DNA from: Girardia tigrina
Taxonomy: Eukaryota
DNA: 64,000 nucleotides
NCBI GenBank assembly: GCA_001938485.1
Contig: MQRK01224867.1
Location: 1 to 64,000 of the forward strand
Reading direction: 5' to 3'
In this document: piece by piece, positions 1-59,680 of the stretch
How positions within the stretch are numbered: position 1 is the stretch's first letter
How the letters are laid out: the number at the start of each line of letters is the position of its first letter
Notes under the pieces: model-generated
Told to the model about the DNA's origin: nothing
Databases searched by the model: none
Seen by the model: the letters and a program-made list of their open reading frames with translations, nothing else
Translations under genes and position numbers: made by a program

Positions 1-509
1 TAGAGTTTTCAAGTCTATACCACCATAATACAAATGGTATAATTGAAAGGCAATTTAGGACTATTCGGGATTATATCAACACGACAAGTGAGACAGATAA
101 AAGTAGGAATTGGGTTGATGTACTTCCAGAAATTGAATTTTGTTTAAATGCTACTGTGCAAAAATCATTACAAATGAGTCCAGCAGAAATAATTTTCGGT
201 TTTAAAATCAATAGAGAATGGGGTGATACAACTAGAGCTGGTAATAGAGAAGAACGGAAACAAACAGCTATCAAAAATCAAAATTTAATTACTTATCAAA
301 ATGACAATCGTGGAAATAGGTATTTCGAAAAAGATGACAAAGTTTTAGTAAAAAAAGAAGGTCGTGGGAAAGATGAACACAGGTATGAAGGTCCTTATCG
401 AGTCATTAAAAAAATTCATGATCGCAGTTATGAGTTGGAAAACGACATCGGTAAAAAAACTATACGCAATATAGAATGGTTAAGATCTTTTAAGAAAGGG
501 GGATGTTAG
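1..509 (+). mobile_element. Ty3/gypsy integrase C-terminal part (element truncated by window start)
   Basis: Frame from nt 3 reads EFSSLYHHNTNGIIERQFRTIRDY...WVDVLPEIEFCLNATVQ...YEGPYRVIKK (integrase core end plus GPY/F motif). A purine tract AAGAAAGGGGGA lies immediately before TG at 504. Confidence 0.9.
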
Positions 510-703
510 GAAGAATATTAGTATTATTAAATTATTATTCAAAATAATAATCATTCAAATAAATATTAATTTATATAAAATTATTTAAATGTGGTTCCAA
601 TTATTTCATCATTTATTCTCGCATTTTTTTATGTATTTGTTTTAATTAGTAAATATATTTTTGGGAAACGAAGTTATTGTGCAATTCTTATTAAGAACTA
701 ACA
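504..703 (+). repeat. 3' LTR (200 bp) of the gypsy element
   Basis: Starts TGTTAG right after the PPT and ends CTAACA (inverted termini). Pogo coding sequence follows directly. Confidence 0.8.
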
Positions 704-1331
704 ATTGTAAAGAAAAGAAGTTGGACCTGCGACTTGTTCGTAAATGGCGAGCAGATTACGAATATATACTCCTAGAGGACATGCAATAGAAAGGAAGCAG
801 TAGAAAGGTGGGTGCAGGGAGGAAACCTGAATTTAGCGAATTGGAAGATGACATTTTTAATTGGATTTTGGCTCGAAGAGAGGCCAATTTCGTAGTCCAG
901 AGATCAGATGTCCAGGAGGTCGTCCTTAATATTGCAAATGAACATGCGATTTCCTCCGATAACTTCAAAGTCTCCAACAAATGGCTTGATGGTTTTCTTA
1001 GTAGATTTAACCTTATCATTAGGTGATCAACTTCTCTTTTTAAAATTGAAGATACTGAGATCATCCGCCGTGCAGCTGAGTACAAATAATTTATTGACGG
1101 AATTGATTTTACTAGCTACAATTGACGAATATTGTAGCTATGGATGAAACTGCTGTTTACTTAGGTCAGTCAGCTGAAACCACAATAAACTTAAAAGGTG
1201 CCACCTCGGTCTATGTTCTATCTACCGGTTATGAAAGCACTAGAATAACCTGTATTTTGGCTATAAGAATGGATGTTTCGAAAGTAGCCCCATGTATTAT
1301 TACTAAAGGAAATAAGGAGACAATAGAGAAG
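704..1331 (+). pseudogene. Degenerate pogo/Tigger-type transposase fragment (CENP-B HTH plus start of DDE)
   Basis: GRKPEFSELEDDIFNWI...FKVSNKWLDGFLSRFNL...NIVAMDETAVY, with stops and a frameshift. Confidence 0.8.
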
Positions 1332-1500
1332 GCAAAAACAACCGGCGTTTTTGCGCTAATGAAACGGTTGAGGGCCGGCCAGTGTGCTTGTTTTTGCCAT
1401 ACTTTGCACGATTTTTGAGAAAATTACCAACAATGTCTCAATACCGTTGAATTCTATTGTGGCCGTGTTGTTGGCGGCGTTGAGTTGTAGCATGCAAAAG
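1332..1500 (-). pseudogene. Possible Tc3/Tc1-like transposase N-terminal fragment
   Basis: Minus frame reads IVGNFLKNRAKYGKNKHTGRPSTVSLAQKRRL (GRP motif). Short. Confidence 0.4.
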
Positions 1501-1639
1501 AAGAAACCAGTTTGTTCCTCCGCATGAACCTATGTTGACGAAAAAAAAGAAGAAACGGGAAAAATAAACTTTTATTTTTTTATCGAATTGTTATTCATGA
1601 TTTTTAAGTTTAAATTACATTCATTTTTTGTCCGTTGAA

Positions 1640-3539
1640 TCAGTATAAACAATCGTCACACCTTAGTATCTAGGTTGAAGAGAGGAGGGTTGCTCACGTA
1701 AAAGCCAAACAAATTTTGTTGTCATGAGATCCCTCGGTACATGTACCTGGAAAGTTCCTTTGTCGATTGGTGCGGTATCAAGAGTGCCAAAATGTTGCCG
1801 GGCCAGTTGTAAATGTAGGTCGTCACTGGGACAATCGTTGAAGAAGAGTTCGTTGACTATGGATGTGTTAGATTCGATAATTAATTGGGCAGGTGATGTC
1901 CCGTGGCGACTGCTGGGAATGTTTCGCCAATCTAAGAGAATGAACGACAATTGTTTGTACCAATCTTTGTTGATGGACATGGTACGAAGCGAATTCTTTA
2001 ACGTTCGATGGAATCTTTCATCAAGGCCATTTGACTGAGGGTGATACGCCGACGTCCGAAGCCGCTGAGTACCCAATTGTTTCAGGAGGTTTGTAAAGAC
2101 ACCAGATTCGAATTTACGGCCTTGATCCGTGATGATGCGTTTGGGTACACCAAATCTGGCTATCCAGTTGTTGTCTCCGTGTTAATGTTTCTCAAGGCCT
2201 GCGCGTGTTGCGATTATCAATTGTAAGAAGATACGAATATCCATTGCATGGTGGGAGGGGACTGACAATATCCATGTGAATAATATCGAAATGACAACCA
2301 GTTGGAAAATTGATGATCGGAGATTTAGTGGGACGGGTCACTTTATTAGACTGACATTGGAAACATGCTTGGCACCATAATTTGATGTCGCGTCGCATGA
2401 AGGGCCACACCACTTTGGTGAGCAGTAATTCATACGTAGCCTTGACTCCCGCATGCGCCATTGAGTGAACGGCCTTGAATACGTCTGCACCGAGGGCCGG
2501 GCCTAGAACGGGGCGGAGACAACCTGTGATAGATGTGTCGAAATAAATGAGGCCACGTGCAGTTGGTTGTTGCGTGTGAACATTGTCATTTATCCATTGG
2601 TGGATTCTGCTCCAAGACTTCCTGAGTGAACAAGGGTTCGAAGTCCAGGGATGCCACCTCAATGCGTTAGAAACAGTCGGCGACGACATTGTTAGTTCCG
2701 GAGATGAATTTGATCTCAATGTCGAACTGGGACAGGTAGCTGATTTGTCGCTGTTAGTGAGGTGATGGGTTCTTCATCTGGAATATTTGAAGAAGTGGCT
2801 TGTATTCCGTATAGATTATGGATGGTCGCCCGATCAACAGATGTTCGAAATGCTTTACCGACAGAAATAAACCCAGAAGTTCTCTGTCGAATGTGAAATA
2901 CCGGATCTGTGCGGATGAGAGTTTGTGTGAGAAATACTCCAAAGGTTCGGGTTTATTGTCGCGCACTTGCGTCAGAACAGCTCCTACCGCGATGTTGGAT
3001 GCGTCTGTTGTTAATGTGATCGGTAATGACCCATCTGGATAGTGCAGGGAAGTGTTCTGTGCAATATCTTGTTTGATTTTTTGGAAAGTCGTTATCGCAT
3101 TATCTGACCAGAATAGGCGTTGTTTCTTCGGACCAGAAGACATGTCCGTGAGCGGAGTTAACGTCTCTGAGATGTGAGAGACGAACCTGCGGCAGTAGTT
3201 GACCATCCCTAGGAAACTGATCAAGGGGGTAACCGTTTCTGGTCGGGGAAACTCTGTGATAGCTTTGATGCAATCTGGCAGTGGATGGATGCCATCTTGT
3301 GATAGGATGTGTTCCAGGAATTCAACACTGGGTTGAAAAAATGAGCATTTTGAAAGTTGCAATTTCAAATGGTTCGAATTGAGCCTCGAAAGGGTCTCGG
3401 AGAGATGTTGTTGGTGAGTCGTGATGTCTGCGGGTGCCACGACAATATCGTAGATGTAGGCTGCAGTGTTTGACAAGCCATTGAGAACGATATCGATGTG
3501 CCGCTGAAATGTTTGTGAGGTGTTTCGGAGTCCAAATTT
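1640..3539 (-). mobile_element. Degenerate Ty3/gypsy pol fragment (RT, RNase H, integrase)
   Basis: FGLRNTSQTFQR, YIYDI (YxDD-derived), FLGMVNYCRRF, LTTDASNIAVGAVL, DRELLG, HHCC zinc finger, TSAYHPQSNGLDERFHRTLK. Confidence 0.9.
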
Positions 3540-3875
3540 GAAAGTTGATTTATAATAATTGAGTAAAAATGAATAATTTGAGTAAAATGAATTCTGATAT
3601 TGACGTTACAAATACTTCTTGGAACTTTTTTTGGGACTGACGGCGTTGGTACTCACACAGGAGATTTAAACTTATCCTGTTAAATGACATCGAAGGAATA
3701 TGAAAGTGATATTTTAAAATTAATCAACGGTAAATCAAATTATTAGTCCAAGAATTAGCGAGTCATTGTCTAACTATATGTATCAACATAATTTATTATT
3801 CGATGAACATTATAAACAATAATAGAAAGCTAGTTTAGCAAACTTCATGTAACCATTACAAAAATTATTTACTCT

Positions 3876-4293
3876 TGTGAGGAATGTTTTGAATTGTGTG
3901 TTGATATTGTGCATGTTGTATGTTGATTCGGATAGTGCTTCTCCTACACAGATGGATGATTGATATTTTCTTTGATTCTTACTAATTAAAAAATAATTTA
4001 ATTTAGTTTTAAAGTAAAAAGATTTAAAATAATTTTTGAATGTATTATTTATTTTTTAATGTAATTTAAAATTTTAATATATTGATTTAATATGTTCTTT
4101 TTTTAAAAAAAATGTTTAGATTTAATTTCAACCAATTACATTCTTTATAATTAATAATTTTTATTATCAGATTTTCATTTATTGAAAATAATTAGTTTGA
4201 ACTCAGAAATATATTGATCAAGAGAGATGTCAAATAGTGAATGCGCTTGTGATATTAATAAATGTTGTAAACCTCATATTGATGTTGTTAATA
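3876..4293 (+). repeat. Solo LTR with TG...TA termini, TSD ACTCT
   Basis: Starts TGTGAGGAAT and ends GTTAATA. ACTCT at 3871-3875 and 4294-4298. Similar to the copies at 6864, 20201 and 38731. Confidence 0.8.
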
Positions 4294-4444
4294 ACTCTAT
4301 CAAATGATTTAAAATATTGGAAGGAATATGAAGAATGATAAAAATTGCTTAATTTGCGAAGAGCATGTACGGAGAATTAATAATCCATAATTTAAATCTA
4401 ATTCTTCACTTGATAGTATTGTTTTAATTATAATTTTTAATTAG

Positions 4445-4511
4445 AGATGCCGCAATTGGAAGATCAACATTTCATTTATCGTTAATTAATTGCTTACGAG
4501 GATTTGATAAG
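4445..4511 (+). CDS. CDC14: CDC14 phosphatase exon (R)DAAIGRSTFHLSLINCLRGFDK
   Basis: AG/GT flanks. Matches the CDC14 segment RDASFGxCTYNLTILDCLQGIRK. Phase 0 junction to the next exon. Confidence 0.8.
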
Positions 4512-4630
4512 GTAATTATGACAATTTAAACATTGTCTTATTGCTTTTATGATTATTGTTTTCAATTTTCTAGACTTCATATTTAAATATTAATTTGAAG
4601 ATTTAAAAGATTTTACTGAAAAGTAAATTA

Positions 4631-5912
4631 TTCGGTTGGCCAAAAAGTCATTGCGTTTTTTACTAAAATATTTATTATCAAAAAATGACATGGATGCACA
4701 AATATTTTTACACGATATACTGTCCATTATTTTCAATCACTTTCTTCCACTTTTCGGTAGCTTCATTATTCCTGATTCATAAAAACATTTGCCTTTGTCA
4801 GCAAAAAAGCCGTCTAGGAACGATTTGATATCATCATCATTGACAAATGTTTTTCTGTTTAAGGAATTCTGCAGTGATTTAAATAAGTAAAAATCCAATG
4901 GGGCCAAGTCTGGAGAATACGGTGGGTGCGGCAAAACCTCCCAAACCAGTGATAAGAGTTTCTGGCGAGTGGTCAAACTTGTATGCGGTCTTGCGTTATC
5001 ATGCTGAATTACAACTCCTTTTCGAATTGCTAATTCAGGACGTTCCTGTTGAATTGAATGAGCCAATTTCTCCACCTGACCATAATATCTGTCTGAATTG
5101 ATGGTTTCATTCCTCGGAAGGAGTTCAAAAAACACAATTCCTTGAAAATCCCACCAGACGGAAAGCATAACCTTCTTTTGGTGAATTTCTGCTTTTGGGA
5201 TCGTTTTCGCAGGCTCACCACGTTTGGTCCATGATCGTCGGCGTTCCACATTGTTGTAAACAATCCATTTTTCGTCACCCATAATGAAGCGCTTCAAAAA
5301 TGGATCACTTTGTTCTCGCTTCAAAAGGGAATCGCAAATGTCTATACATTTCACCAAATGAATTTCTTTCAGTTCATGTGGTAACCACATATCGAGTTTA
5401 CTGACGAATCCAAGTTTCTTTAAATGACTTCCAACACTTGATTTTGATATTTCCAGAGTCTCTGCAACTTCTCTGTTCGTCATATGTGGATTAGATTTGA
5501 TCAGTGCTGTTATTTTGTCGCCATCAACTTCAACTGGTCGACCGGAGCGTGGTGCATCTTTCAGATGAAATTTTTCAGAACGAAATTTAGAAAACTAGTA
5601 TTGACACTGTCGAAATTTTAAGGAGTCACTACCATATACAAAACATATCTTCTTATGAGCTTGCACAGCGGTTTTCCCTTTGCGAAAATAATGCAACAAA
5701 ATATGTCGAATATGCTCATTTTGATTTTCCATTTCGAATTGACGGTAAAGTAATCAATTAAAACAAAATCAATTAATATTTTGTATAAACATAGTCTGAA
5801 AATTAAGGTTTCAGAATATATAATTGAATTTAAATTTTATCATATCGTTTTATATTTTCAAGCTTTTTATTAGGACGTACTCAAAAACGCAATGACATTT
5901 TGGCCAGCCTAA
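4631..5912 (-). mobile_element. Full-length mariner (DD34D, cecropia/Hsmar1-like); transposase ~5732-4706 inactivated
   Basis: ~30-bp TIRs TTCGGTTGGCCAAAAAGTCATTGCGTTTTT / AAAAACGCAATGACATTTTGGCCAGCCTAA with TA flanks. Motifs PRSGRP, WLPHEL, GDEKW, HDNARPH, YSPDLAPLDF. One in-frame stop near 5597 and a C-terminal frameshift. Confidence 0.95.
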
Positions 5913-25079: not shown

Positions 25080-25789
25080 NNNNNNNNNNNNNNNNNNNNN
25101 NNNNNNNNNNNNNNNNNNNNNNNNNNNNNATATATATATATATATATCCATGAAATTTAGAAACCTGTTTTTAAAGGCCTTCTACTCAATCGATTTTCTT
25201 TAAACTTAGCATACTTCCTCATTCTCGATGACATGATTATGTAAAAATTTGATCGAAAAAAATCTTTTTAAGATCCTCAAATGGGCTAAAAGCGGAAAAT
25301 TCGGAGTTATCAAAAATATTAATTGCAAGATATCTATTTATAAATTATAAGTAGTTTATATTAATTTTTAATGTTTTTTTAATTGAACTTTTTTAAATTT
25401 TAAAATCTTTGTTGGCAAAGTAGAGTTCTGTCCGCATAAAGATCAGATATAAAAAATTTAATTTTTTGATTTACTATTTTTGTATATTTAAATGACAATA
25501 TACAATTAGAAATTTGTAAAACAAAAATTTAAATTTTGTTTCAATACCGACCTGTAAGATAAACGACTGTTAGAACGCAAGAATAATTTATAACAATTTA
25601 TTTAAATCCAAATTCAAAATTGTGTGCAACACTCAATTATTTAAACAACACAGCATAAATTAATTTAATATTTAATTAAAATAATTTCGAGAGACTTCAG
25701 AAAATTTTAGAACCGATTGTTAATATTGATTTTAATAAATTATAGTATTAAGATAAATTATAATAAAGATAATTCCTCACATCCCCCCT

Positions 25790-28700
25790 CGTTAGAAAAG
25801 TTTTAGTCACTCCACATTTCTTCTAATTCTTCTACCGTCTTCACTTTTTAGTTCGTAACTACGATTATGGACCTTATTAATCATTTTAAACAGTCCTTCA
25901 TATCGGTATGCTTGTTTGGATATGTTCTGTTGCTTTACTAGAACTTCATCACCAACTTCAAAGTTTCGTTTGCCTCTATGAGCGGTGCTATAAGTGACTT
26001 TATCCTGATTTATACGTGCTTTCTCAATGAGATCTTTTATTCTTGTTTATTACTTGCGTTACACTACTGCTGATTTATTTTGAATCCGAAAATGATTTCA
26101 GCTGGGCTCATCTGCATTTCTTTTTGATTTGTGGCATTCAAACTAAACTCAATTTCCGGTAGTAAATCAACCAAAATTTTTTTCGTTCTTTAACTAATGT
26201 TGCATTCATAAAATCCCTTATGGTTCGAAATTGTCTTTTCACCAGTCCGTTAGTGCTCTGGTGGTAGGATTTGAAAATTGTAATTTTATATTATACTTCT
26301 GTGCCATTAATTTCATCAAGTTAGATTCGAAACTTTTACCACAATCGACATGGATTATTCTTGGTGCACCAAACTTCAGTATCCAGTTTTTTACTATTGT
26401 TTTTACTGTAGTTTCTTTGTCTTGTTTTGTCACTGCATTGAGACTGATATATCGGCTACAATTGGTATATGATTGCCCAGACATATCATTTTCTGTATTT
26501 ATTTGGTTTCATAGGGCCACAAAAGTCTACATATATCTCTTCGAAAGGATGTATACCTTGTTGTTATACCATTTCTTTTGTTCTTCCTGTAAATGTCATT
26601 TGTTTTTGACAAGGTTCGCATGTGCCTATGACGCATCTTATGTTCTCAGATAACCCATCCATGTCATATTTATCTTATATATAATCTGTAACATTTTGTA
26701 TCCCTAAATGACATAATATGTGATGTATATCTATGATAAGTTCGATCGTTTTAGATTTTGGTTATAATAATTATTATTATCTAATAATTATTATAATTAT
26801 TATCTTTTTTAATTATTATCTTTTGTCACCACCACGTTGTCCTGTAAGTGAAACTGGTCTTGCTTACTTGATTCGATTTGTTTTTTATACTATATATTTC
26901 TTCATTATTATTCTGCCACCTCTGTCCATTTATCTCTGACTCTAGTGCTAATATTTTGGTCTTCATTTTTCCTGTTTTGGCATCAGGATGTTGTAGTTCG
27001 CAGTGATTACATGTTCCACATTTGTTCCGGGATAGTCCATTTGCATTACAGTGAAGTGCCCCATTGCGATATTCAAATTTCATATCCAGGCTACTTAATA
27101 AATTTAACCAAGTTTGAAATTGGGAGGTAATTGGTTTTTTTGTCGTTAACATATACGTTATCGCCTTATGATCTGTGTGTAGTGTAAACTGTTTTCAATA
27201 TAAGTAGTGTTTGAAATGTTGCGTAAAGTAGTAAATTGCTAATAGTTCTTTACTAGTGATACAATACCCTATCTCATGTTTATTCATGGCATGGGATCCG
27301 TATCCTATAAACATTTCGTTTCCGTTATCATCCAATCAGGAAAGGATCACTCCAATGGCATTAAAACTCACGTCTGTGTCCAAAATGAATGGTTTTTTAA
27401 AATCTTGGTATGTCAGTATCTGTGCCTTACACAGTAATTCTTTTAACTGATTGAAAGATTTTTCGCACTCATCGTTCCAGTATAACTTATCTTTATTGCT
27501 ACCACACAATGTGTCTAGATTTCGAGATATTTTCGAATAGTCCTTAATAAATTTCCTATAGTAATTGCATAGTCCTAAGAAACTTCTAAGATTTTTTACA
27601 CAATTTGGTTTTTCGAAGTTTTTTATGGCCTAGACTTTCTCTGGGTCTGTCATCACTCCCTTTTCATTGATGATATGTGAAGTGCCCGCATATTTTTTTT
27701 ATTTATAACAAAATATTTATTTGACTATCTATTTACTGTGTGTTGTGATGGACAGGGTCATTTTTTTGTGTTTTGAATGGGTTTGATTTTTTTATTTATG
27801 TGAATGGTAGCGTGAGAAGACACCAATGAAAGTAAAGAAATGACAGTGGATGATGAAATTATGAAGAAAATAATAAATAAATTATGAAGGCAATAATATA
27901 TTTGGCACGAAAATAAAAAAATCAATAAACAATTCAAAAAGTCAATAGCCTATATCAAAGCCAAATATTATAAAACCTCTCACCAAATTCCAAGTGGATT
28001 TATTTCTTATTATTCAATTCCCTGTGAATACAAAAACCGAACACAAAAATTCTTGACCAGCTCCATACAAATATTTGTTTTGCTGACAGAAATAAAGTAA
28101 CTTTGTACTATTTGAATCCCCTATAACTGACTTTATTTTTTTTGTGATATCCTTCGTTTTATCCTTCTGTTGTATTGTTATTAATCTAATCTTTTTTTAA
28201 ATTAACTTATTGTCTTTATTCTTATTTATATTCGTAGGTGGATTAAAAATTCGGTTCATCCTATATTTAATCCATTTCAATATGTCCTAAAAAATTAATC
28301 TCTTTTTGTATTAGTTTGCATTTTTCTGGTTTTACTTTTAGTCCAGCAGCTCTAATCCTTCCAAATATTTTATTTAACATAGTTACGTGATCTGTCGTTG
28401 TTTTTGAGAAAATCAATATATCATCCAGGTAGACTAGGGCCTCCTTCCGATTCATATCTCTAACCACTACATTCATAAGTCTTTGGAACGTTGCAGGGGC
28501 TGCTGCTATTCCAAACGGCATGCGATTAAAACAGTATTGACCAACTTCTAGTTTAGAACGCAGTTTCTATCTTTGAATTTTCTTCCAATTCCACCTGGTA
28601 ATACGCATTCCCTAAATCTATCGTGCTAAAGTATTTTGAACCATTTAGTGTGTCAATCATATCTTCAATATTTGGCATGGGGTATGCTGGCCGTTCGGTA

Positions 28701-29478
28701 ATTTTATTTAATTGTCTGAAATCTAGACACAATCTTATTTCATCTTTTTCCTTCTTCCATACGCATACCATGGGTGTGTTCCATGGTGAACTACATTTCT
28801 TTATGATATTATTGTCCTCAAGGTTTTTTATCAAATCATATATCTTCTTTACCAGATAGGCCGGCTTTCTACGGGGTCTCATTAATATAGGTTTCCCAAA
28901 CGTTTTTATACTATGCTTTAGCAAAATTGTGCACCCTATATCCCATTTAATCGCCATATCTCTTTATTTTGCTGAATTATTTCATATAGGGGTGATTTAA
29001 TATCTATCTTCATTATTTCTCTAGCATTTTTACATCTGTCATTATTCTAATAAGTTTTTCCGAAGTTTGTGCCTAGACTGCATATTTCCTTACTATTACA
29101 TAAATCAAAATTATTATTTTCATCTGATCGAGTATACTTATCTCTGTTCAGAAAAATTTTAAAGGCGTTCATAAAATCCATACCATATATTATTTTAGGA
29201 GACAACTTTTCCGCAATATAAAACTTTATCCGCTTTTTTGTTCCCTCTATTTCTAAATCTAAAGATATCAATCCCATAACTTTCAGTGGATTATCATTTG
29301 CACATACGATATTGTTAAAATCATTATATTCTATTTCAATATTTAAACTCTTTATTATACTTCTATCAATGACATTGATTCTGGCCCCTGTATCTAACAA
29401 ACAATCGAAATATTTATCATTAATTTTTACAACTCTACTTGGCCTACCATTCATTTTATCAAAAACTATTTTAAACAT
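25790..29478 (-). pseudogene. gypsy pol (PR-RT-RH-IN), frameshifted
   Basis: LLDTGARIN, RLCLDFRQLN, MPFGIAAAPATFQRLM, YLDDILIFS, WILKFGAPRIIHVDCG. Confidence 0.95.
27678..28279. repeat. Nested solo LTR (602 bp) inserted in RT, TSD ATATG
   Basis: TGAA...TTCA termini. ATATG at 27673-27677 and 28280-28284. RT reads FLGHI|INEKGVMTDPE across the insertion. Confidence 0.85.
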
Positions 29479-29562
29479 GGGAGAGCGTGAGAAATTTTGT
29501 TATATTTTTATTTACATTTACAACCGATATAGTAGATATATTAAAATATTTAAAAGAATCAT

Positions 29563-30438
29563 TTATACAATTACAATTTGATGGTGCAAGAGCGGGCGCA
29601 GCGATTTTGTAGCTGTGGCACGCCGGTGACGGGGAGCGAACATCCGGTCGGGGGTCACATTTAAAATTTGCACCTCGAGAATCGGGTTGATGACGATCGT
29701 GAGAATGGCCTTGATGATCTGCAGCTGCACGGCGTCCCCGGAATGGCCGTCCTGAAAGGCGTCACAGATGAACACGATGATCTTATCGATGAGTCTTTCA
29801 TTGGAGGAGTCGCGATAGAGCGCCGAGTTCGAGATGTGACCGTATGCATTCAGTTTCTGGAGACAGTCGAGTGCGATCACGATAATTCTCTGAGACTTGC
29901 ACGAGAACGCCATTTCGAATGACCGAAAGAAGCGCGGATCGTTCATGAGAGTGTCGACATCGGATTTGATCGACGGTAAGACGACGACTGATTGGCCGTT
30001 TGTGTCGGTAATTTTCTCTTTCAATTGCGCCAATACGTTGTCGCAACATTTCTTTAGTTCAGAGTTATGAGACCTTTTGATTTCTTTGTCGTGGAGAATT
30101 CGCGGCTCAGTGTCTCTCAGCTCACGATACCAATAATTGATTTTATTGAAACTGATCGATTCTGTTAAGTCGAAACACAAAATCACCGCCTTAGCGCCGC
30201 GATAATGCATTCGTGTCATTGACTGATATCGCCCGCTCCCTGCCGTGTCCCAAATGCCCATTATAATCGGAATATTATTGCTGTTCTTCAACTGGCGCGC
30301 GTGATAGGCCGCCCTCATTGTCGGTTGATAGGCGTTATTCGCCTGGAAATTCCCGTTCAAAAATCGATCGACTAATGCAGTTTTTCTAACGCATTCTTTG
30401 CCCAAAACAACAACTTTCAAGTCGACTTTGGTTACCAT
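29563..30438 (-). CDS. Chimeric intronless ORF (291 aa): Rab24-like N-terminal half (30438-30103) fused in frame to a BIG1/ARFGEF-like N-terminal DCB region (30102-~29669); probably a retro-captured pseudogene
   Basis: VDLKVVVLGKECVRKT...GIWDTAGS...YRGAKAVILCFDLT (Rab24-type WDTAGS), then ILHDKEIKRSHNSELKKCC...LDCLQKLNAYGH...LIDKII...VQLQIIKAILT (BIG1/2 N-terminus). Confidence 0.85.
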   Translation of the reverse strand: MVTKVDLKVVVLGKECVRKTALVDRFLNGNFQANNAYQPTMRAAYHARQLKNSNNIPIIMGIWDTAGSGRYQSMTRMHYRGAKAVILCFDLTESISFNKINYWYRELRDTEPRILHDKEIKRSHNSELKKCCDNVLAQLKEKITDTNGQSVVVLPSIKSDVDTLMNDPRFFRSFEMAFSCKSQRIIVIALDCLQKLNAYGHISNSALYRDSSNERLIDKIIVFICDAFQDGHSGDAVQLQIIKAILTIVINPILEVQILNVTPDRMFAPRHRRATATKSLRPLLHHQIVIV

Positions 30439-30917
30439 TACAATTCGAAATTAACGATAAAAATTCACACTGGATAAATTGAAAATCGAAGCAGAATTAA
30501 TGTTTATTTATTTATCTTCACAAATTGATTCGAATTCAATGAAAAAATAATAATGGCGACTTCAATTTCTGTTTAAATCTTTTTTGCGTCAACAAAATTA
30601 AATTAATACATTTAAACAACTCGAATAATTAAAATAAACATATTGTCATTTGCACTGTCCGATTCACTCAAAAAAACCGATTACAAATTAATTTTCAAAT
30701 AAAACCAAAAAAAGTATAATAGAAATTTCAATTTTTAAAATCCAAATTTTGAAGAATTAGATTTATTTGTGGAAATTCACAATAAGTTTGAGCCGGTTCT
30801 GACTGACAAGAAATATTCTAAATCTCGCTTTCTAGCACTAATTTTGAAGGCTTATTTCATCGTGAAACACAATTATTTACATTACAAATAAAGGTTCTAG
30901 AACTTTCTTACCCCTTA

Positions 30918-31907
30918 TCATATAGCTCCCATCACCTCTCGTCTTGACGGAGCATGCCCATTTGGGGATTGTTTATATTCTGATATATCCACGGTTTTCA
31001 CATCGTCATCCATTTCATTGAAGTCAATCGCTACCATGTTCCTCGAGTTACCGCCGAACCTTCTGTCGCGTTCACGGAGTTGTATTTGTCTTTTCTGAAA
31101 ACATTGGTAACTAAAATGTCCCCTTTTCTTACAATCGGAGCAAGTGATATTTTGGCATTCCTGTCTGATGTGGCCATATTCTTTACATGCATAACATTTC
31201 ACTTGCCGAATGGGGCAATTTCTCATAATATGACGTTCTCTTTGGCACGACCGACAGATTAGGTTTTTTCGGTATAACTCTCTTCCTGGCATTCGTCTTT
31301 GCATGCTGTTCCATTGTTCATTCCTCACTGACGCTGGAAAATCTTGCTTCTGTTTAACAATTACCAGATATGAGTGTCTTCTCTGAATCGTTGAAATGTC
31401 TTGGGTTTCTTCCTTCTCGATTATTTCCATTTTATTGATAATATCTTTAATTTAATCGACTTCCACTGCGTTTCTGAGGGTTAATTCCCTTTTAATAGCA
31501 TTGTTTTTTGTAATATGTACCAAAAGTATGAATTAAGTTCTGTTTCATTCCATTTGTGGCTTCATCAACTTCTTAACCATTAATTCAATTTTATCAAAAT
31601 ATACCTTTGCACAATCCAATCATTTTTCATATTTGTATAAGGATATAAGATCTTGTATTAGAGATGACGGTATTGTGAACGCTTTTCTTAATCTTTCCTC
31701 GAATTCTGTTATCTTCGGGTCCACTGATTCGTATATCGCGCTTAAATCTTTGGTGATGAACGCTTTGACCAAAATTCCTTGCAGGTGTTGGTTCGTGCCT
31801 GATACTTCAAAAAATCTCTTGCATTCCTTGATAAACTCTTCTAAATTTGAATCCACCGCAATCTTTGCTGGAACCAAATTTTGTAAATAATTAGGCGTGG
31901 TCGCCAT
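30918..31907 (-). pseudogene. gypsy gag with zinc knuckles, disrupted
   Basis: Starts MATTP at the LTR/PBS junction. CYACKEYGHIRQEC and CSDCKKRGHFSYQC knuckles. Stops and frameshifts. Confidence 0.9.
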
Positions 31908-32277
31908 GTTAGTACATAAGAATAATTTATAACAATTTATTTAAATCCAAATTCAAATTGTGTATAACAATCAATTATTTAAACAACACACCGTAAATTA
32001 ATTTAATATTTAATTAAAATAATTTCGAGAGACTTCAGAAAATTCTAGAATCGATTGTTAATATTGATTTTAATAGATTATAGTATTAAGATAAATTATA
32101 ATAAAGATAATTCCTCACAACGACAATAGAAGTTCCTATTAATCATGTATAATTAAATTATTCAAAAATTTGAAATTGAATTTGGAGCTTGATTTGATCT
32201 AAAATATAAAAAAGTAGAGTTTTTTCACACAAGTTTTCGCCAGCAAAAACACGCTATTCAATATTTGATCACGAACT

Positions 32278-33900
32278 AATCCATGACGTGACACATCCAG
32301 GCTCGAAAGCTACCTACTAACGAATGCGCTCCAAAGTTATCTGGCCCCTTATGCTCAAATACATAAAACTATGGTGTCACATCTGTTTCCAATGCCCGAA
32401 CTATTTGATCACGAGCAACATTCACTACCTTGAAGGACCTCAGTTACTTCCAAAAACCGCCCATTAACAAAGGAAAGCTGTACTTTGACACATAACTCCC
32501 TGAGTGAATCATGGCAGTACTCGGCCAAGGCCTAGGAGTTCACACCTTCCAGACAATCCATGACGTGACACATCCAGGCTCGAAAGTTACCTACTAACGA
32601 ATGCGCTCCAAAGTTATCTGGCCCCTTATGCTCAAATACATAAAACTATGGTGTCACATCTGTTTCCAATGCCCAAAAACAAGGTTACAAAGCACATCAA
32701 GCTACCTACCTTGACGTATCCCACAAGCAATCGGTTTGACACGGTGTACATGGGCATCGTTGGACCACTTCCTATATCACATGCTACCAGTACATCCCCA
32801 CCGTTTCTGACAGAAACACCAGGTAGCCCGAAGCCTTCCCCATAAGAACTCTAGCCAACGAAATAATCTCTGACATATTCCTCAATCACTGGATATAACG
32901 ATTCGGCATGCCGAAAAGGATCATCATAGATCCAGGGTGACAATTCCAGTCGGAGTTATTTAGGGACCTCACCGAACGGTTGGGTATCGAGAAAATCAGT
33001 ACCACCGCGTAGCACTCGCAAACTGACAGTCTCGTAGAACGGTCTTACAGCACCGTAAAAAATTCGTTCCGAACGCTAGCACGTTCACACGACTGGACGA
33101 AACAATTACCACTCATCTTTATAGACCGGAGAAACATTCCCCAAAGCAGATATGGGACCTCGCTTGCAAAATTACTCTTCGGGACAAACACTTCGTTCAA
33201 CAACGAGCTATTTTTCAATGAGGCAACAAGGAACGATGAGATGCTCACAGCGGCAAGCGACCACATTCTACGACCCGATAGAATTCCGCCTAATCCTGGA
33301 TGATTGCACTTCTTCGTCCCGAAAGAACTTGCCACCGCAAAAATTGTCTGACTCCAAAAAGAAACCGCCATCTCTCTAGAAAGTCGCTACACCGGACCAC
33401 ACAAGCTTCTAAACGTAGCACTCAACAACAACACAGCCAAAATTTTGACTCACGTAAAGGAGCTCACTGGGAATATCTACAAGCTCAAGCCCTGCCTACA
33501 CTTAAAGGACTTCACCATGGAAGAAACCAAGTCACAGACAGACAACAATTATTCCAACGAAAAGAAGACACGACCGCCTCCCTACAAAGGTAAGATAACA
33601 ACAAGACGCTAATTTTAAAGAACCATCGTCTGCCAAAGATGCTTCTGTGAAAACGCAAAGTAACAAATAGAACAATAACTCGCACCCCCATAACATAACA
33701 ACAACAGACAACACACTATCATACGCCACAGCATCAACTGACATACACAACAATATTAACAGCACATCACACAAGAGACGACACATCACTATACAACACA
33801 GTACAGCTGCGTTTCGTCAAATGGATCACTCGACACAGCCAGCCTCTTAAACCAGCAGCACGGACACAATCCAACTTTGTTCTACATTCTTCGGTGGAGA
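32278..33900 (+). mobile_element. Degenerate gypsy integrase fragment (related to 1640-3539) with an internal 120-bp duplication
   Basis: RFDTVYMGIVGPLP, WI.RFGMP, ERSYSTVKNSFR, RYTGPH. 32278-32397 is repeated at 32555-32674. Confidence 0.8.
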
Positions 33901-34109
33901 CTGATGGGGTGCTCCAATAAGTGAAACAGAAATAAAAAAAACTTTAAAAAAATTGTGTGATAATAATTAATGAAAATGCATAAAAAGTGTTACCATAAAA
34001 ATTTTGCAAATTTGAAAATAATTAATGTTATAAAACAAAGATGTTTGTTATTCCTTCTGGAAATAAATGACACTTTATCACCAACTCAAAAGTCGTTCTC
34101 GTTTCGGAT

Positions 34110-34197
34110 TTCAAATGGTGTGCATAATATACTTTTAGATGATACAAATATACCACAATTTTGGAGGAATAAAGGAAGCTATAAACAATATAATCGA
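34110..34197 (+). repeat. 88-bp diverged copy of part of a CDC14 exon (37765-37852)
   Basis: SNGVHNILLDDTNIPQFWRNKGSYKQYNR versus SSGVHNILLDDSNIPQFGRNKGSFRQYNR. Confidence 0.9.
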
Positions 34198-34268: not shown

Positions 34269-36340
34269 CAGGGCCGGATTTACAGTTTCAGGGGCCCTAG
34301 GCCAAAAAAATGGGGCTCTATTTTGAAAAATAAAAAATAATACCAAGTTTATTTTTGTTTGAAAAAATATAATAGTCGTTTAATTTACCTCAAAATTTTA
34401 TTTCAATCAAATTTACATATTTTTTCTGTATTTTTCATTGACAAAATCGTTAATTAATGAATCAAAATCAACTGACCTCATTTTGTCAGCATTACTTGAT
34501 AATAATGCAACATTATTTAACGTTTTTTGGGAAAGAGTTGATCGCAAACAATTTTTTGTTAATTTTAATTTGGAACATGACCACTCTCCAGAACAATTTG
34601 ATATAATGAAACACATGAAAATTCTAAGTATTATTTCGGTATTAGGAAATGTAATCTCCATTTGTTTTTTCCTTAATAAGTTTATATAAATCCAAATGAG
34701 AGAAATGAGGAGCTTGGGTATTGAAATGATTAATAAAATATTTATGTATGTGTTCGATTTCAGAATATAAATTTTCGTCAATGTCTTCTGCGTAGTCTTC
34801 CACGAGACGACCAGCACAAATATTTAGTTTATCTTTATTGCTTCTTGTGTCTATTAAAAATGCAAATTTGTCATTCAATTCATGGTAGCATTGAGCTCTT
34901 TCTTTCAAATCTGTAGTGAGATTATTGACGATTTTAGGAAAACATTTTTCTTAAATTCTTCACGTGGACTCAACTTAAGTTCCTCTGAACAATTTTCACC
35001 TGGAAGAACTTTCATTTTACGGCGTCTCTTTTCTAAATAATCAGTATTTGGTAATAATCATGTAACATCTTGTTCTATTGAATCGAATTTTTCAGTTAAT
35101 CCAAGAAAATAATCAGGAAGAGATGAATAAAGTTCAGAACATGTATCAAGAGTAATACTAGCATGTTGCAATGATTTGGAAACTGCATTCATTCGTTGTA
35201 AAATTTTATCTCACATTATTGTTTGTATGGAAAATTCAAAAGTTTCCATTTTTTATAGTAAATTTCCAGCCTCTGCTCTTGCTTTCGTTTCAAAACTTGA
35301 ACTTACATTGATTGTAAGTAATGCTTCCATCAATTTGTTGTAGTTCTGGTAAATACATTTGACTGAGTCAGGATGAGCACTCCATCGAGTATTCGATAGT
35401 GATTTCAGTGAACTACTTCCTAATTGTTCCAAAATATTCCATCGCTTTGTAGAAGCAGAAAAAAATTGTACAGTTCTTGAACAATATCGAAAAAGTTAAT
35501 TGCTTCGAAATTATAATTCATACCAACCTCTCCTACTAAGTTAAGAGAATGACTTGAACATGGCAATAATTTTGCAAAGTTATTAAGTTCCAAAGTTCTA
35601 CTTTTCATGCCTTTATATTTTCCAGTCATATTACTGGCGTTATCATAAGACTGGCTTCTCCAGTTGCTGATTTCTATGTTCAATATTTCGTTTAAAAAGT
35701 TTACCGTTACATTTGCTAAATTTTCCCCTGTGAGATCATCCATATGGATGTAGTTGACAAATCTTTCAATTGGCTCATTGGCTTGATCTATGTACCTCAA
35801 AATCACACATAATTGATCTTTGTAAGTCACGTCAGGTGTCGAGTCTATTGATAAGCCATAATACTTCAATTTTAGAACATCATCGCTTATTGATTGCAAT
35901 ACTTTTCTTGACATCAATACGATCAATTCCTCATATGTAGTCTTCGAGATGTAGTTTGTTTTTCCAGAACCACTGTCACCATAATTTGTTATGTGCTCGT
36001 TCAAAAAAGGATCAAACTGTGCAATCAACTCTAGCAGACCGATAAAATTTCCGCTGTTATCAGTCCCAAATTTTCCATTCGAACCTCTAAAAGCTAAGTT
36101 TCTTTCAATCAATGTACAAATTACAGCCGTAACTCTTCTTAGAACCTCTCTCCAGTAGTTTCGCTCTTTACAAATTTGCAGTAAAAGTTGATCCTTTTAA
36201 ATGCTTTTTTTTCTATGAAAGTATTTTAAAAAAGCTGTTTTGTGCTCAGATGAGTTTTCATGGCTTTAAATCGACGCCACGGAATTTTTCCAATCTTTAA
36301 ATCCGATTGAAGCTAGAGCAAATTTTGAGGCTTCAAAAGG
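34269..36340 (-). mobile_element. Degenerate hAT transposon (ZMYM1-like transposase), one terminus retained
   Basis: Terminus CAGGGCCGGATTTA...GGGGCCC. Motifs LAFRG..NSGNFIGLLELIAQFD, DSTPD, QSYDNASNM, FPNTEIILRIF...KLKLTKNCLRSTLSQ. Confidence 0.9.
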
Positions 36341-37521: not shown

Positions 37522-37890
37522 TCACCAAGCCTGGTGTTGGAGAATCGGTCCGATGCATCAAAATGTTGTTCGACGAACTTTTTCAAGTAAAACAGGAGAT
37601 AACAGGGCTAAACTATCAGCTCTAAATAACTACGATATAAAAGTCCCGAAAAATCCTTTCTATGATACAAGTGACAAAGATATTTCTTTAATTCCTCAAG
37701 GGGACATGTTAAATAGCATTAAGTCCTTTAACAGAATCAGTCAGAATTTGTTGGAAACAAAAACTTCAAGTGGTGTGCATAATATACTTTTAGATGATTC
37801 AAATATACCACAATTTGGAAGGAACAAAGGAAGCTTTAGACAATATAATCGACAATCTTTGTTCTCGACTGACAGTTATGATGATAGCGA
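37522..37890 (+). CDS. CDC14: CDC14 C-terminal-region exon (HQAWCWRIG...QGDMLNSIKS...)
   Basis: TTTCAG acceptor and GTAAGT donor. Phase 2 matches GA| at 25003. Resembles CDC14 KQASLWVQG and QGDKLRALKS. Confidence 0.8.
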
Positions 37891-44645: not shown

Positions 44646-45326
44646 TTACTTCATGACCAATTGGTCAATGTTACGTTGCAGAATCGTATCTTTCATAGCG
44701 TTAAACACCGTTTCAATATTCCGCTGATCGACAGCCGTTGTAAAATGTCGATAGAGCGTTCGTTTTTTCGAAGGAGTGGGCTGAGCAATAACTGAGGGTC
44801 TACCTGCGGCGTTTTGAGCTCCAATATTAGCGTTTGGTGATCGAGAATGAGCGCCAGGGTTATCGACAAATGAAACAAATGTATCAACTAGAAACTGTTG
44901 AACATTACTAAGATTATGAGGATCAAAATTGGAAGGAAAATCTGGAAATTCATTGCGAATATTTGAAATTTTATTGGTAACTTTTTCCGTTAATACGTCG
45001 GTTTTATTGAAAAAAATGATAACAGAAACTGAAAGAAAATACTGAACGTTAATCAAATCTTCAAAAACTCGCATGGCTTCGCGCAACTTATTCCTGTGTT
45101 CTTTAGACATTTTGTCATAGTAATGTTCATCGAAATGACTACTGGCAATTAGAAACAAAACACTATTCATATCTTGAAATACTTGACACCATTTTTTTCT
45201 TTCTTTTGTTTGACCACCGACATCAATAAAAACAATACAAGCTCCGTGAATATCAATCTCTTCTTCTATGATAGAATCAGTGGGTTTCCGAGACCAAACA
45301 ATGTCTTCATTTGACGGTTGAAAATT
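44646..45326 (-). CDS. G-protein alpha subunit, G12/13-like, terminal coding exon
   Basis: Acceptor AG at 45328-45327. NFQPSNEDIVWSRKPT, DVGGQ..ERKKW, FFNKTD, HFTTAVD, and the C-terminus KDTILQRNIDQLVMK*. Confidence 0.9.
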   Translation of the reverse strand, partial: NFQPSNEDIVWSRKPTDSIIEEEIDIHGACIVFIDVGGQTKERKKWCQVFQDMNSVLFLIASSHFDEHYYDKMSKEHRNKLREAMRVFEDLINVQYFLSVSVIIFFNKTDVLTEKVTNKISNIRNEFPDFPSNFDPHNLSNVQQFLVDTFVSFVDNPGAHSRSPNANIGAQNAAGRPSVIAQPTPSKKRTLYRHFTTAVDQRNIETVFNAMKDTILQRNIDQLVMK

Positions 45327-47769: not shown

Positions 47770-50345
47770 GTTATAAGTTCTGTCCGAATCCTTTCTGTCT
47801 TCTTCACTCCCATAACCATTCTCGAACATAGGTTATTGAAGTCCTGTAGTTTCTGTATTCTCTTTTCTGTAGTCCTCCAGTTTTCACTACTGTAATAAAC
47901 TACAGGGAAGATACAAGTCTGGATAATTTTCTTCTTATTCCTCTGGGCTCCTCAATATATGGCTACCACATCCAAAGGATATAATTGCATGTAAAAGACT
48001 TACGTTCCATTGCAAAATGGACTCCACAGAGACGAACATATTTCAGAGACTGTGGAGAGCCACTATACCAATTGAAAAGAAGATCAGTGGAAGGAGCAAA
48101 CAAATGATGAAGGAATGCCTCCGTGTCGATGTGAAATGGTTATTCGGCAAAGATGCTGATTACAATGAATTTGTACAACACATTATTCGCCGAGACCCAA
48201 GCATTTCACAGAGCACATACATAGCTGGACTCATTAGGAAAGGAAGATCGGAAAGGACAGCAACAAGTTTATCCAAACTTATCTTAGATTTCGGACTTAG
48301 TATCGCGCCAAAAATAATGCGAAGGATATTGGAACACATCTTGGCATCAGACGAAGCAGTGAAGGAAGGAACAGACGCGTATTACGACGATATCAAAGTG
48401 AATACGAATAAAAAAAAGACCAATCAGCTAATGTCGGTACTCACTCGATTCGGTTTAGAGGCTAAACCCCCAATGACGATAAACGGAGGCAGAGTGTTGG
48501 GACTGGCTGTGAAAGAAACAGTAAACGGAGAGCTCAAATAGCAGCGAGACGGACCACTCCCACAACTGCCACATCAAATAACTCGTCATAATCTTTTCGC
48601 GTGGAAAGGACACTCCCCAGTGAAGGATGGTTGCGTCCATCGTCCAGCTTCATAAAACGAAATGCCAGTGGAGGAGATTAGGGCACCAAAGTGGAACCGC
48701 AGGTAGCAGCACTAGCACGACAACTTGCAGAAAGAATTAAGTCGGAAGATCCCGTTCAGGGAATCTGGGAATCCTGCAAACTGATGAAGGGAGAGTGTAA
48801 TGCAACACCAGCTCGATTGCAGTAGGGGTGGCCGTCGAGATCGGCACAGAAATTGTGGAGGACGCATGCTGGCTTCGACCGAAGAGTGACAGTAACCACA
48901 TTAATCTTTCAAAGCATGAGGCCACGAATCAAGCTCTCAAAGAAGTATTGAAATGGGGCCTCCGAAAGTTTGAATTATTCACTGATTCAGCCACAGTAAA
49001 CAAGTGGCTCACTGCAGCTTTGTCCGGAGCAGAACCAGTTCGATCTCAGGCCCTCAGTGAGTAGAAATAAAATAGAATTAATCTTTTCAAGCAGGTAGTC
49101 CAGGAGGAGAGCTTCATAGTATCAATTAGGTTCATTCGATCAGAAGAAAATAAGGCGGACATTTTGACTCGTGTACCAAGTAATTGGTTAGCAGTAAAAA
49201 ACGAATCAATCGCAGCATCGGCAATCGAATCAGGAGAGCAACAAGAGAGTGATGACCGCTTAAAGAAGTTGCACGAAATCCAACACCTTGGGACAAAACG
49301 CACTATGTTCTTGGCAAGGAAAGTGTGGGGACGAATAAAGTAACAGAGGTAACAAGTAAAATCATTTGTGAAAAAATGCGACCAGTGCACGTCAATCGAT
49401 CCAGCACCGGTTCGTTGGGAGAAAGGAGAAATCGGCACCAAGAAGACGTGGCAACGGTTGGCGGTAGATGTAACATATGAATGGAAAAAATTCCTAACGG
49501 TCGTAGACTGTGGCCCAGGACGATTTATTATATGGTGTGAAATTAAGTCCGAAAACGAGGAAGAGGTTTATAAAGCATTATATAGTATTATATTCGAATT
49601 TGGATCTCCAGAAGATGTATTACTGGATAATTTTAGCACTTTCAGAGGAAACAAGTGCTTGATCGATGGTGAGTATGGGCGAAATTCAGATGCGTGAACC
49701 GACAGAGCGAAAACGGAATTGTAGAACGGAGCCACCGCAGGTTCAAAAGAATGGTAGCTCGAAGTGGTGGTCAGGTCTGGGAGATGATCGCGTGGTACAA
49801 CGCAACACCAAACGCGAATGGTATAATTCCAGAATCAACGGTGTTAGCGCAAAAACAGAGATTGCTTCTGTCGAAAGATTTCTCGTTAATGCAACCTCAT
49901 CCACAGAAAGAATTGAAGAACGACAATTTGACAGTAGGAGAAAAATTATTTGTTAAGCCAGCACCGCCGTTCAACTGTACTAGGAAGTGGGCACGGGCAA
50001 CTGTTACCAAAGAACCCCAGTGAATCGCATAGAAGTGAAAGGAATGTCATACCACATCAGTCACGTGATGCGTGCAACCCCAATGTCTACAAAACGAACA
50101 GGAATCGGCAATCAGGAAAGTAATACATTCGACTCGACGAGAGTAGCGAGGATCGAATGGGAGAGCGACGAGGAGAGGAGTATACAGAAACGAACAATCA
50201 GCAAGATCCGAAAGCTGAAGAACGGCCTCGCCGCATGGTGCGTCCCAGGATTCGACTCAACGACTTTGTCTGTGCTAGCACTCAGATTCTCAGTGACGAC
50301 AAAGTGCCTCCTTGCTCGAGCAGCGTATGCTTGTGTGCCTTGAAG
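47770..50345 (+). mobile_element. Decayed, internally deleted LTR retrotransposon (probable 5' LTR ~47770-47959, RT YYDD, RNase H, integrase)
   Basis: FGLSIAPKIM, AYYDDI, LFTDS, CDQC, WQRLAVDVT, NGIVERSHRRFK. TGG follows the putative LTR. Confidence 0.8.
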
Positions 50346-58599: not shown

Positions 58600-59680
58600 T
58601 ACTAAACTCAAAAATTATTTAGTTCATATGAACATTATGAGACATGCCATGCAAAAACTTGAGCATTTTCTCCCGTTTATGGTTTCTTATTTTATTGAGA
58701 ATAGGCTCGTCTGCTTCCTCATATCATCGTCGTTTCCGTGGGGCTTCATATCTGGCGATGAAACGTTCGTAATCTGCGACAAATGTCTTTTGCATGTTTT
58801 TTTAAGTGAATAATAAATTTTCATATTACTGGATGACTGATACCATATCCTTGCTGTAATTTTCTAAGGTAACCTTCAGCAAAAATATTGGTTCTATCAT
58901 ACTGAATTAAGGTACGCTGATAAACCGACCAAACTTTAAATGAAAAGAGTTGAAGTGAAAAATATGTTTTGGTAAAACAACTTATGACTGGGTCTAATTC
59001 TGGAGGTAGATAGTTATCAAGAACTGAATCTAAAGCAATTGACGTCATCATACGAGCTTTTAATGCAAAATGTGCATCAATATTATAACGGTTGAAAAGC
59101 TGAAATTCAGAAAGATCTTTGCGGAGATTTTGAATGAGATGAAAGAAACAAACCCTTATGTTAACACCAGGGAATTTGGTACGTAAAGTCTGATATACAC
59201 CAATTTCAAAATCCATATTTACTGTATCTAGATTAAAATGTTGCCATATATTTTTAATCATCCGGAATTTGATTAAATAAAGGTAGAGTGAGCAAAAACG
59301 AACCATTATAATTTTAAAAAAATTGTAGGAATAACTAATTCCTGTCTTGTTTCAATGTATTGGTATACCTTTATTGGCACGAGTTCCGATTATCAATTTT
59401 CTCATTGTATCTCGTGATGGAAATTTACTTAAAACACCATCTGAAATTTTTTTGGCAACTGAAATTCTTATTTCTTTAGGCTTTTCTATTGTTTCGTTCT
59501 GCAGCACAACCGGTATTACTACACGTATGTTGAACACGTACGGAATGGAAACAAGTGTAAAAAGTATAGTGCTAGTTGTCCGGTGCCGAATTGTCCGTTT
59601 CCAAAATGAGAACCCTTTGGCAACATAAAACCGATATTTACAATTATCCAGTTTCATATTGAACAATTCAGTGTAAATAC
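58600..59680 (-). pseudogene. Decayed MULE transposase
   Basis: MDFEIG...FPGVNIRVCFFHLIQNL...WSVYQRT...RTNIFAEG. Confidence 0.85.

Follow-up and report, generated by a model that had tools for sequence, protein, structure and literature searches.

A 64,000-nucleotide stretch of Girardia tigrina DNA (assembly GCA_001938485.1, contig MQRK01224867.1, positions 1 to 64,000), called the window in what follows, contains a Ty3/gypsy-type long terminal repeat (LTR) retrotransposon with a foreign insert between gag and pol. The insert bears an open reading frame (ORF) of 291 codons, in which the first half of a Rab24-type GTPase is joined in frame to the N-terminal part of a guanine nucleotide exchange factor (GEF) of the BIG1/BIG2 type. 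The new observation is that the junction falls on the position of a conserved phase-0 intron of Rab24 genes, which favours derivation of the chimera from one spliced transcript. On balance, we think that a processed, chimeric host complementary DNA (cDNA) was probably retroposed by the LTR machinery, and that it is now most likely a non-functional passenger in a dead gypsy copy.

The retrotransposon

The features of the element are listed below in the order in which they follow each other along its sense strand, which is the minus strand of the window. TSD stands for target site duplication, PBS for primer-binding site, PPT for polypurine tract, PR for protease and RT for reverse transcriptase.

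25568–32119 (−): whole Ty3/gypsy-type LTR retrotransposon copy, 6,552 bp, defined by LTR pair, TSD, PBS, PPT and domain order
32120–32124 (−): TSD GTCGT, 5' side, read directly
31907–32119 (−): 5' LTR, 213 nt, TG...CA, from alignment to the 3' LTR
31894–31906 (−): PBS, TGGCGACCACGCC, beginning with TGG and adjoining the 5' LTR
30918–31579 (−): gag with three CCHC zinc knuckles and at least three breaks, from Pfam zf-CCHC and a motif count
25806–29478 (−): pol (PR, RT, RNase H, integrase) with at least 16 breaks, from Pfam, 3' bound approximate
25782–25790 (−): PPT, GAGGGGGGA, adjoining the 3' LTR
25568–25781 (−): 3' LTR, 214 nt, pair of the 5' LTR
25563–25567 (−): TSD GTCGT, 3' side, read directly

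The two LTRs are in direct orientation, have TG..CA ends and are 94.4% identical (202 identities, 11 mismatches and one gap). Searched separately against Pfam, the pieces between them match zf-CCHC, RVP/gag-asp_proteas, RVT_1, RT_RNaseH(_2) and rve, in this order along the strand of the ORF. The LTRs, TSD, PBS, PPT and domain order thus confirm a structurally complete, coding-degenerate Ty3/gypsy element, with the integrase last in pol and the chimeric ORF on its sense strand. The original observation that a sequence foreign to retroelements lies between gag and protease of a gypsy element is confirmed. No second copy of the element is present in the window.

Breaks were counted as a reference-free shortest path through the recognisable coding parts only, which gives a lower bound. 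Over 3,481 nt of such sequence, gag and pol together have at least 19 breaks, those of pol being a mix of stops and changes of frame. The start of gag is approximate and was placed from the gag gene of a metagenomic relative (L007, described below). Compared with another gypsy pol of the window, the pol at 25806–29478 has an extra segment of about 0.6 kb, in which AT and GC skews are reversed and in which no ORF, Pfam match or clear terminal repeats were seen; the segment may, like the insert, be of foreign origin.

The insert between gag and pol

From the gag stop to the first ATG of the protease-bearing frame there are 1,439 nt. Their features are:

30873–30883 (−): 11-nt direct repeat, AATGTAAATAA, left copy
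29519–30872 (−): foreign insert, 1,354 nt, bounded by the jump in composition and the CCHC-to-PR distance
30439–30872 (−): AT-rich non-coding leader, GC about 0.25
29563–30438 (−): chimeric ORF, 291 codons and stop, from the ORF list, Pfam and the PDB
30103–30438 (−): Rab24-derived half, aa 1–112, G1–G3, beta1 to alpha3
29668–30102 (−): BIG1/BIG2-type DCB fragment, aa 113–257, equivalent to human BIG1 residues 17–167, helices 1–6
29566–29667 (−): C-terminal tail, aa 258–291, GC 0.53, low model confidence
29508–29518 (−): 11-nt direct repeat, right copy

The insert is made up of a 434-nt AT-rich leader, possibly a parental 5' untranslated region, the chimeric ORF and a 44-nt trailer. With a GC content of 0.48, a third-position GC content (GC3) of 0.60 and an observed-to-expected CpG ratio (CpG o/e) of 1.5, the ORF is confirmed as compositionally foreign to the element; the corresponding values are GC 0.32 for pol, GC3 0.24 for PR, GC 0.23–0.25 for the insert flanks and 30% GC for the window as a whole. 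Between the last zinc knuckle and the protease active-site motif there are 1,700 nt, against 135–246 nt in four distant gypsy loci. Subtracting the insert leaves 335 nt, and all domains of the element are present, so the insert is an addition that replaced no element sequence. The direct repeat around it is exact over 11 nt, and on extension 15 of 16 positions match with one indel.

Neither end of the insert shows a poly(A) or A-run in either orientation, nor terminal inverted repeats or Helitron-type ends. An Rfam scan of the insert returned no family, and no meaningful tandem repeats were found there. Pack-MULE-type elements have terminal inverted repeats with 9–11-bp TSDs, and Helitrons have 5'-TC and 3'-CTRR ends with a hairpin. 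Capture by a DNA transposon of either kind was rejected, as the inverted repeats and the Helitron-type ends are both absent. A processed pseudogene made by a long interspersed nuclear element (LINE) was likewise rejected; an A-run is absent at both ends and the 11-nt repeat is insufficient by itself.

The chimeric reading frame

At 291 codons, the ORF is the longest in the window and runs without introns or interruption. As had been predicted, it is intact on the strand of the element beside broken gag and pol genes, with no break against at least 19.

Its Rab24 half begins at the parental methionine. Pfam places a Ras domain at residues 8–112 (E 2e-24), and in the PDB residues 7–115 match Rab5, Rab21 and Rab22 with about 63 bits; no Rab24 structure is among the PDB matches. 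The assignment to Rab24 was tested against more than 100 proteins from a profile search that are named Rab24 by their source. The first 115 residues score 108–134 bits against these proteins, with 50–53% identity; the best Rab of another type, Rab5A, reaches 63.7 bits, about half as much. The highest Rab24 match is from the flatworm Macrostomum lignano, followed by sponges. The catalytic glutamine of Rab proteins normally follows the WDTAG motif, and in the Rab24 subfamily it is replaced by serine. The ORF has this serine, as do 99 of 124 Rab24 family members.

By these comparisons the first half is confirmed as Rab24-type, as originally stated with mention of the WDTAGS motif, and it appears to be a derived fragment rather than a functional member. 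The second P-loop glycine, retained in 120 of 122 Rab24 relatives, is an arginine, and the Rab part ends after helix alpha3 at residue 112. About 60% of the G domain is present; G4, G5 and the C-terminal prenylation cysteine are absent. The original conclusion that this half would not be a normal GTPase stands.

The second half matches human BIG1 residues 17–167 over ORF residues 112–257 in PDB entries 5j5c and 5ee5, both Arl1-DCB complexes (E 8e-28), and Pfam recognises the DCB domain of Mon2/Sec7/BIG1 at residues 122–249 (E 1e-12), in agreement with the predicted derivation from the N-terminus of BIG1/BIG2. The DCB profile is covered from position 22 to 125 of 177, the BIG homology stops at residue 256–257, and the HUS and Sec7 domains are absent. 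Judged from its sequence, the DCB part is a fragment and not a functional member of the BIG/Sec7 family of large Arf-GEFs.

Arl1 binds helices 1, 4, 6 and 8 of the DCB domain, and mutation of Gln200 of BIG1 abolishes the binding (Galindo et al. 2016, PMC4956616). Aligned to BIG1, the ORF keeps all five Arl1 contacts of helices 4 and 6 (Lys105, Ala108, Tyr109, Leu149 and Leu156). Arg14 and every helix-8 contact (Ile189 to Asn203, including Gln200) are lost, which amounts to seven of the 12 closest contacts, and the dimer interface formed by helices 7 and 8 is also absent. These losses weaken the earlier idea of a decoy, even though the five contacts in helices 4 and 6 are kept. The product is predicted to possess neither parental activity: it cannot be expected to work as a GTPase or as a GEF, because G4 and G5 are absent, the P-loop glycine is an arginine, and helices 7–8 of the DCB domain are missing.

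The 34-residue tail has no detectable homology in any frame. An origin as frame-shifted BIG sequence was rejected, no frame scoring above shuffles, and apparent extensions of the homology into two database proteins (P0041 and P0042) were dismissed as gapped noise. An AlphaFold model of the ORF has a mean pLDDT of 74, with values of 50–87 for the Rab part, where confidence is low around switch II, 84–92 for the DCB part and below 57 for the tail. Foldseek searches with this model return 5ee5 and 5j5c as nearest structures, followed by Rab5.

Intron positions and the Rab-BIG junction

Exons of orthologous genes were mapped on their own genomic loci, for Rab24 from a crinoid, a gastropod, a sponge and Macrostomum, and for BIG from a psyllid, a nematode, a fish and a schistosome. 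The Rab24 genes of the crinoid, gastropod and sponge all have a phase-0 intron directly after the residue aligned to residue 112 of the ORF. The Rab-BIG junction (30102/30103), which is in frame, coincides with this position within one codon. The crinoid and gastropod genes have further introns at ORF-equivalents 39/40 and 63/64, and the crinoid gene one more at 89/90; psyllid, nematode and fish have BIG introns in common at ORF-equivalents of about 137, 194 and 243. The ORF has none of these. Six conserved intron positions, three from each parental family, are therefore missing.

Relatives of the chimera and of the element

A word-indexed protein search returned no close relative of the Rab half, and an HMMER scan of 1.84 billion representatives none of the BIG half, the best match being 45% identical. 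Nematodes, fish, a psyllid and flatworms account for the top matches of the BIG half, and for both halves the best matches come from scattered metazoan groups. Looked up exactly, the ORF and nine other ORFs of the window gave no record, and scans of metagenomes and viral contigs for relatives of either half were empty. None of 10 DCB proteins with long N-termini has a Ras domain ahead of the DCB domain; an ancient Ras-DCB architecture was rejected, as no homologue with such a layout is among the matches. No paper connecting Rab24 to retrotransposon chimeras was found in the literature. One database match of the BIG half, the 668-residue protein P0027, has an RVT_1 reverse-transcriptase fragment in one chain with DCB and HUS domains of BIG type; either its gene model was extended across a transposon, or transposon and BIG sequences have come together there as well.

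The only close relative of the element itself is L007, a contig of 1,087 bp from a JGI metagenome (3300013315, contig Ga0173609_10436272). It is 91.7% identical to the element at the nucleotide level from the LTR through gag, down to window position 31101; its gag is open and the gag proteins are 79% identical. Past the zinc knuckles, at L007 positions 939–1087, it changes to unrelated, GC-richer sequence, and the point of divergence precedes the insert. L007 is uninformative on the insert because it diverges after the knuckles; what follows the switch is either other cargo or an interruption of another kind, close to the corresponding region of gag. A metagenome scan based on PR returned only distant gypsy elements, 25–44% identical.

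Origin of the chimera

The route we favour would start with a single chimeric pre-mRNA, produced by a fusion gene, by read-through or by trans-splicing, in which Rab24 and BIG1/BIG2 parts were joined by splicing. That the Rab part stops at a conserved phase-0 exon end suggests one spliced template and a single capture. The chimera would run from the Rab24 start codon to this exon end and continue in frame into BIG codons of about 17–167, with an AT-rich leader before it, a short unrelated tail after it and no poly(A). Template switching inside a virus-like particle during reverse transcription could then have captured the transcript once, adding the cargo to the gag-pol spacer at no loss to the element, and the whole would have integrated as one unit. 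Because the insert makes Gag-Pol read-through impossible, such a copy could spread only with proteins from other copies. The ORF may have stayed open through youth or luck, and its protein would most likely be a passenger.

The position of the cargo on the sense strand of a complete element fits capture by that element. LTR-mediated retroposition in animals is known to place retrocopies within LTR elements; such retrocopies are partial, lack poly(A) and sometimes combine several genes (Tan et al. 2016, PMC5131818). Both halves of the ORF are, furthermore, eroded alike. In non-redundant family alignments, the Rab24 half differs at six of 32 columns that are at least 90% conserved, where real Rab24 proteins differ at three at most, and the BIG half at six of 28, where real BIG proteins differ at a median of one and a maximum of seven. 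About 20% of the strongly conserved positions are changed in each, and this equal erosion fits one shared history. The original proposal of capture by the element through an RNA intermediate thus fits best; its second part, the successive capture of two mRNAs, is disfavoured by the exon-border junction.

Several findings weigh against a captured, spliced passenger. Nothing was replaced and an 11-nt repeat brackets the insert, which resembles insertion into a continuous element. In the collections searched there is neither a parental gene nor another copy, and no close relative that lacks the insert. On the BIG side, the junction lies inside exon 1, some 16–30 codons past the start, in all four BIG genes mapped, and a random break would fall on a Rab24 exon border with a chance of about 0.1 (about seven introns per 203 codons, one-codon uncertainty). 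In Macrostomum, Rab24 lacks introns over roughly the first 145 codons, and schistosome BIG1 has a single one. The parents of the chimera may therefore have been intron-poor; the earlier argument from missing introns is helped by the six absent positions and hampered by these two genes, which lack most of them.

The open frame also speaks against a passenger. At the break rate of gag and pol, 4.8 breaks are expected in the 873 nt of the ORF and none is observed (P = 0.009); correction for the lower stop-proneness of the ORF reduces the expectation to 3.0 (P = 0.05). Under neutral simulation, the probability of an open frame is 0.07–0.18 at a divergence of 2.7%, which is half the LTR divergence, at most 0.04 at 5% and at most 0.004 at 9%. 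Erosion of the conserved columns suggests a neutral divergence above 2.7%, with a wide error. The signal of preservation is therefore suggestive, not decisive, and a younger insert would account for the open frame equally well.

Two successive template switches between separately packaged mRNAs are a possible, if unlikely, way in which the two parts could have been joined. Drosophila chimeras of several genes, made by at least three switches, are documented (PMC5131818), and the lack of an exon border on the BIG side, in four of four genes, is what such switches would leave. The Rab side, however, ends exactly at a conserved phase-0 exon end, with the chance of about 0.1 given above, and the junction is in frame.

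We consider it unlikely that a chimeric retrocopy or DNA fragment was inserted secondarily into the gag-pol spacer of a resident, perhaps decaying gypsy copy, duplicating 11 nt of target, so that the gene was never borne by the element; non-LTR retrotransposon machinery or the repair of a staggered break might have done this. A repeat of such length occurs in three of 1,000 dinucleotide shuffles of the 60-nt zones beside the gag stop and the pol start, and the observed one, exact over 11 nt and extending to 15 of 16, would fit such an event; with unbiased zones, comprising the whole non-coding stretches, the count rises to 79 of 1,000, and short duplications may also stem from non-homologous template switching. 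No element sequence is missing, and published LTR-mediated retrocopies replace element sequence rather than interrupt it (PMC5131818). An insert younger than the element would account for an ORF that is open next to much-broken gag and pol genes, and the extra segment of about 0.6 kb in pol would mean that the same copy took up foreign DNA elsewhere. Against this, no known vehicle fits an insert that has no poly(A), terminal inverted repeats or Helitron ends, and both the sense orientation and the arrival in a target as small as the spacer, about 75 nt in an element of 5.2 kb, would have to be coincidental.

A selected gene, borne by the element or exapted by the host and expressed now or recently, for example as a dominant-negative fragment, seems rather improbable. 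Its partners could be those of Rab24, in autophagy and late endosomes, or those of the BIG1 DCB domain, that is Arl1 at the trans-Golgi. Selection would account for a frame that is open from its native methionine next to at least 19 breaks in gag and pol (P 0.009–0.05), and the change of about 20% of the conserved columns corresponds to roughly 5–15% neutral-equivalent divergence, at which an open frame is rare (P at most 0.04). The five Arl1 contacts in DCB helices 4 and 6 persist (PMC4956616), model confidence is high for the DCB part (pLDDT 84–92), and GC3 (0.60) and CpG o/e (1.5) are far from local equilibrium. On the other hand, the statistical support is marginal and varies with the age assumed. 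The Rab half comprises about 60% of a G domain, has lost its P-loop glycine and is modelled with low confidence near switch II; the DCB part has lost its dimer interface and, with Gln200 among them, seven of the 12 residues in closest contact with Arl1 (PMC4956616); the 34-residue tail is without homology and of low confidence; and neither a second copy nor a Ras-DCB homologue was found in the collections searched. The narrower proposal of an accessory gene that selection maintains in a retrotransposon lineage and that interferes with autophagy or trans-Golgi traffic, or of one since co-opted by the host, is quite improbable; the effector face of Rab24 and the Arl1-binding helices of the BIG1 DCB domain may, in that case, act to the benefit of the element, and the chimera would match, for an animal retrotransposon, the cellular genes transduced by retroviruses.

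An assembly artefact joining unrelated reads, to which a repeat-rich region with several N runs (the nearest at 25080–25129) might be prone, is most improbable, as the element contains no N, parts of one and the same element, with matching LTRs and TSD, adjoin the insert at both ends, and the junction is in frame.

The remainder of the window

The rest of the 64 kb is a transposon graveyard. A second, unrelated gypsy-type element occupies about 1–4600 (−) in longer open pieces, among them an RT/RNaseH ORF at 2754–3476 and an integrase zinc-binding ORF at 2192–2719; a plus-strand fragment in the same region encodes protein 46–55% identical to the pol of the element studied here. It is followed by a mariner-type transposase ORF (Transposase_1) at 4737–5483 (−). 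A hAT-type transposase in pieces (DUF4371 and hAT dimerisation domain) lies at 34413–36112 (−), and the remnant of a MULE transposase at 58821–59306 (−).

Beyond the 5' LTR there are two pairs of direct repeats. The first, 32278–32400 and 32555–32677, consists of 123-nt copies with 98% identity, 277 nt apart. The second, 34110–34197 and 37765–37852, has 88-nt copies with 92% identity, 3,655 nt apart, and may mark the termini of a further element that encloses the hAT pieces. GC-richer islands with strong strand skews are located at 32001–34000 (0.41) and 48001–50000 (0.44), in surroundings of 25–30% GC; the ORFs at 33045–33371 and 48017–48541 within them have no Pfam match.

A 174-codon ORF at 44646–45170 (−) matches the C-terminal third of G-alpha12/13-type subunits (Pfam G-alpha, E 4e-23), with about 91 bits to G-alpha i/12 and 13 chimeras. 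Its GC3 is 0.31 and its CpG o/e 1.5. It is probably either the last exon of a host gene or a further fragment without introns.

Comparison with known systems

That exons can be shuffled in animals through the capture of genes by LTR retrotransposons is accepted, but few cases are documented. The present locus is an unusually legible case, in which a complete element carries an open frame assembled from two membrane-traffic genes. Its exon-border junction suggests that splicing, besides template switching, can build the chimeras that elements capture. Should further copies exist with a conserved frame, this would be a rare case of an animal retrotransposon that bears an accessory gene of host origin; otherwise the locus is a well-preserved passenger, of use for dating and illustrating the mechanism.

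The nearest parallels are the Drosophila cases of Tan et al. 2016 (PMC5131818), such as CG4799_CG11924_r in BATUMI, a two-gene chimera inside an LTR element. They share partial, poly(A)-less, mRNA-derived host cargo from more than one parental gene, placed on the sense strand of a non-autonomous element that has kept both LTRs. They differ in that the coding region is partly replaced; here we find a pure addition, an 11-nt repeat and one junction at an exon border. Maize Bs1 (Elrouby and Bureau, cited in PMC5131818) similarly unites fragments of several unlinked cellular genes in one frame. It is a plant element with three parents and several copies that have the same switch points, whereas the G. 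tigrina locus has two parents and a tail, an animal-type genome and one copy seen.

Intron-free copies and, possibly, short flanking direct repeats are also features of LINE-mediated processed pseudogenes and chimeric retrogenes. Unlike these, the insert has no poly(A) or LINE-type 3' end and sits precisely within an LTR element, on its sense strand. Acutely transforming retroviruses take up a spliced host gene in sense orientation, and in the rare non-defective type the gene is added without loss of gag or pol. The G. tigrina element resembles such transduction in its probably spliced host cargo, in the sense orientation and, as in the non-defective type, in the addition without loss of gag or pol. 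It is distinguished by a truncated two-gene chimera in which both activities appear disabled. The locus is thus most likely a further case of a known process, gene capture by LTR retrotransposons, with a non-functional passenger as its cargo.

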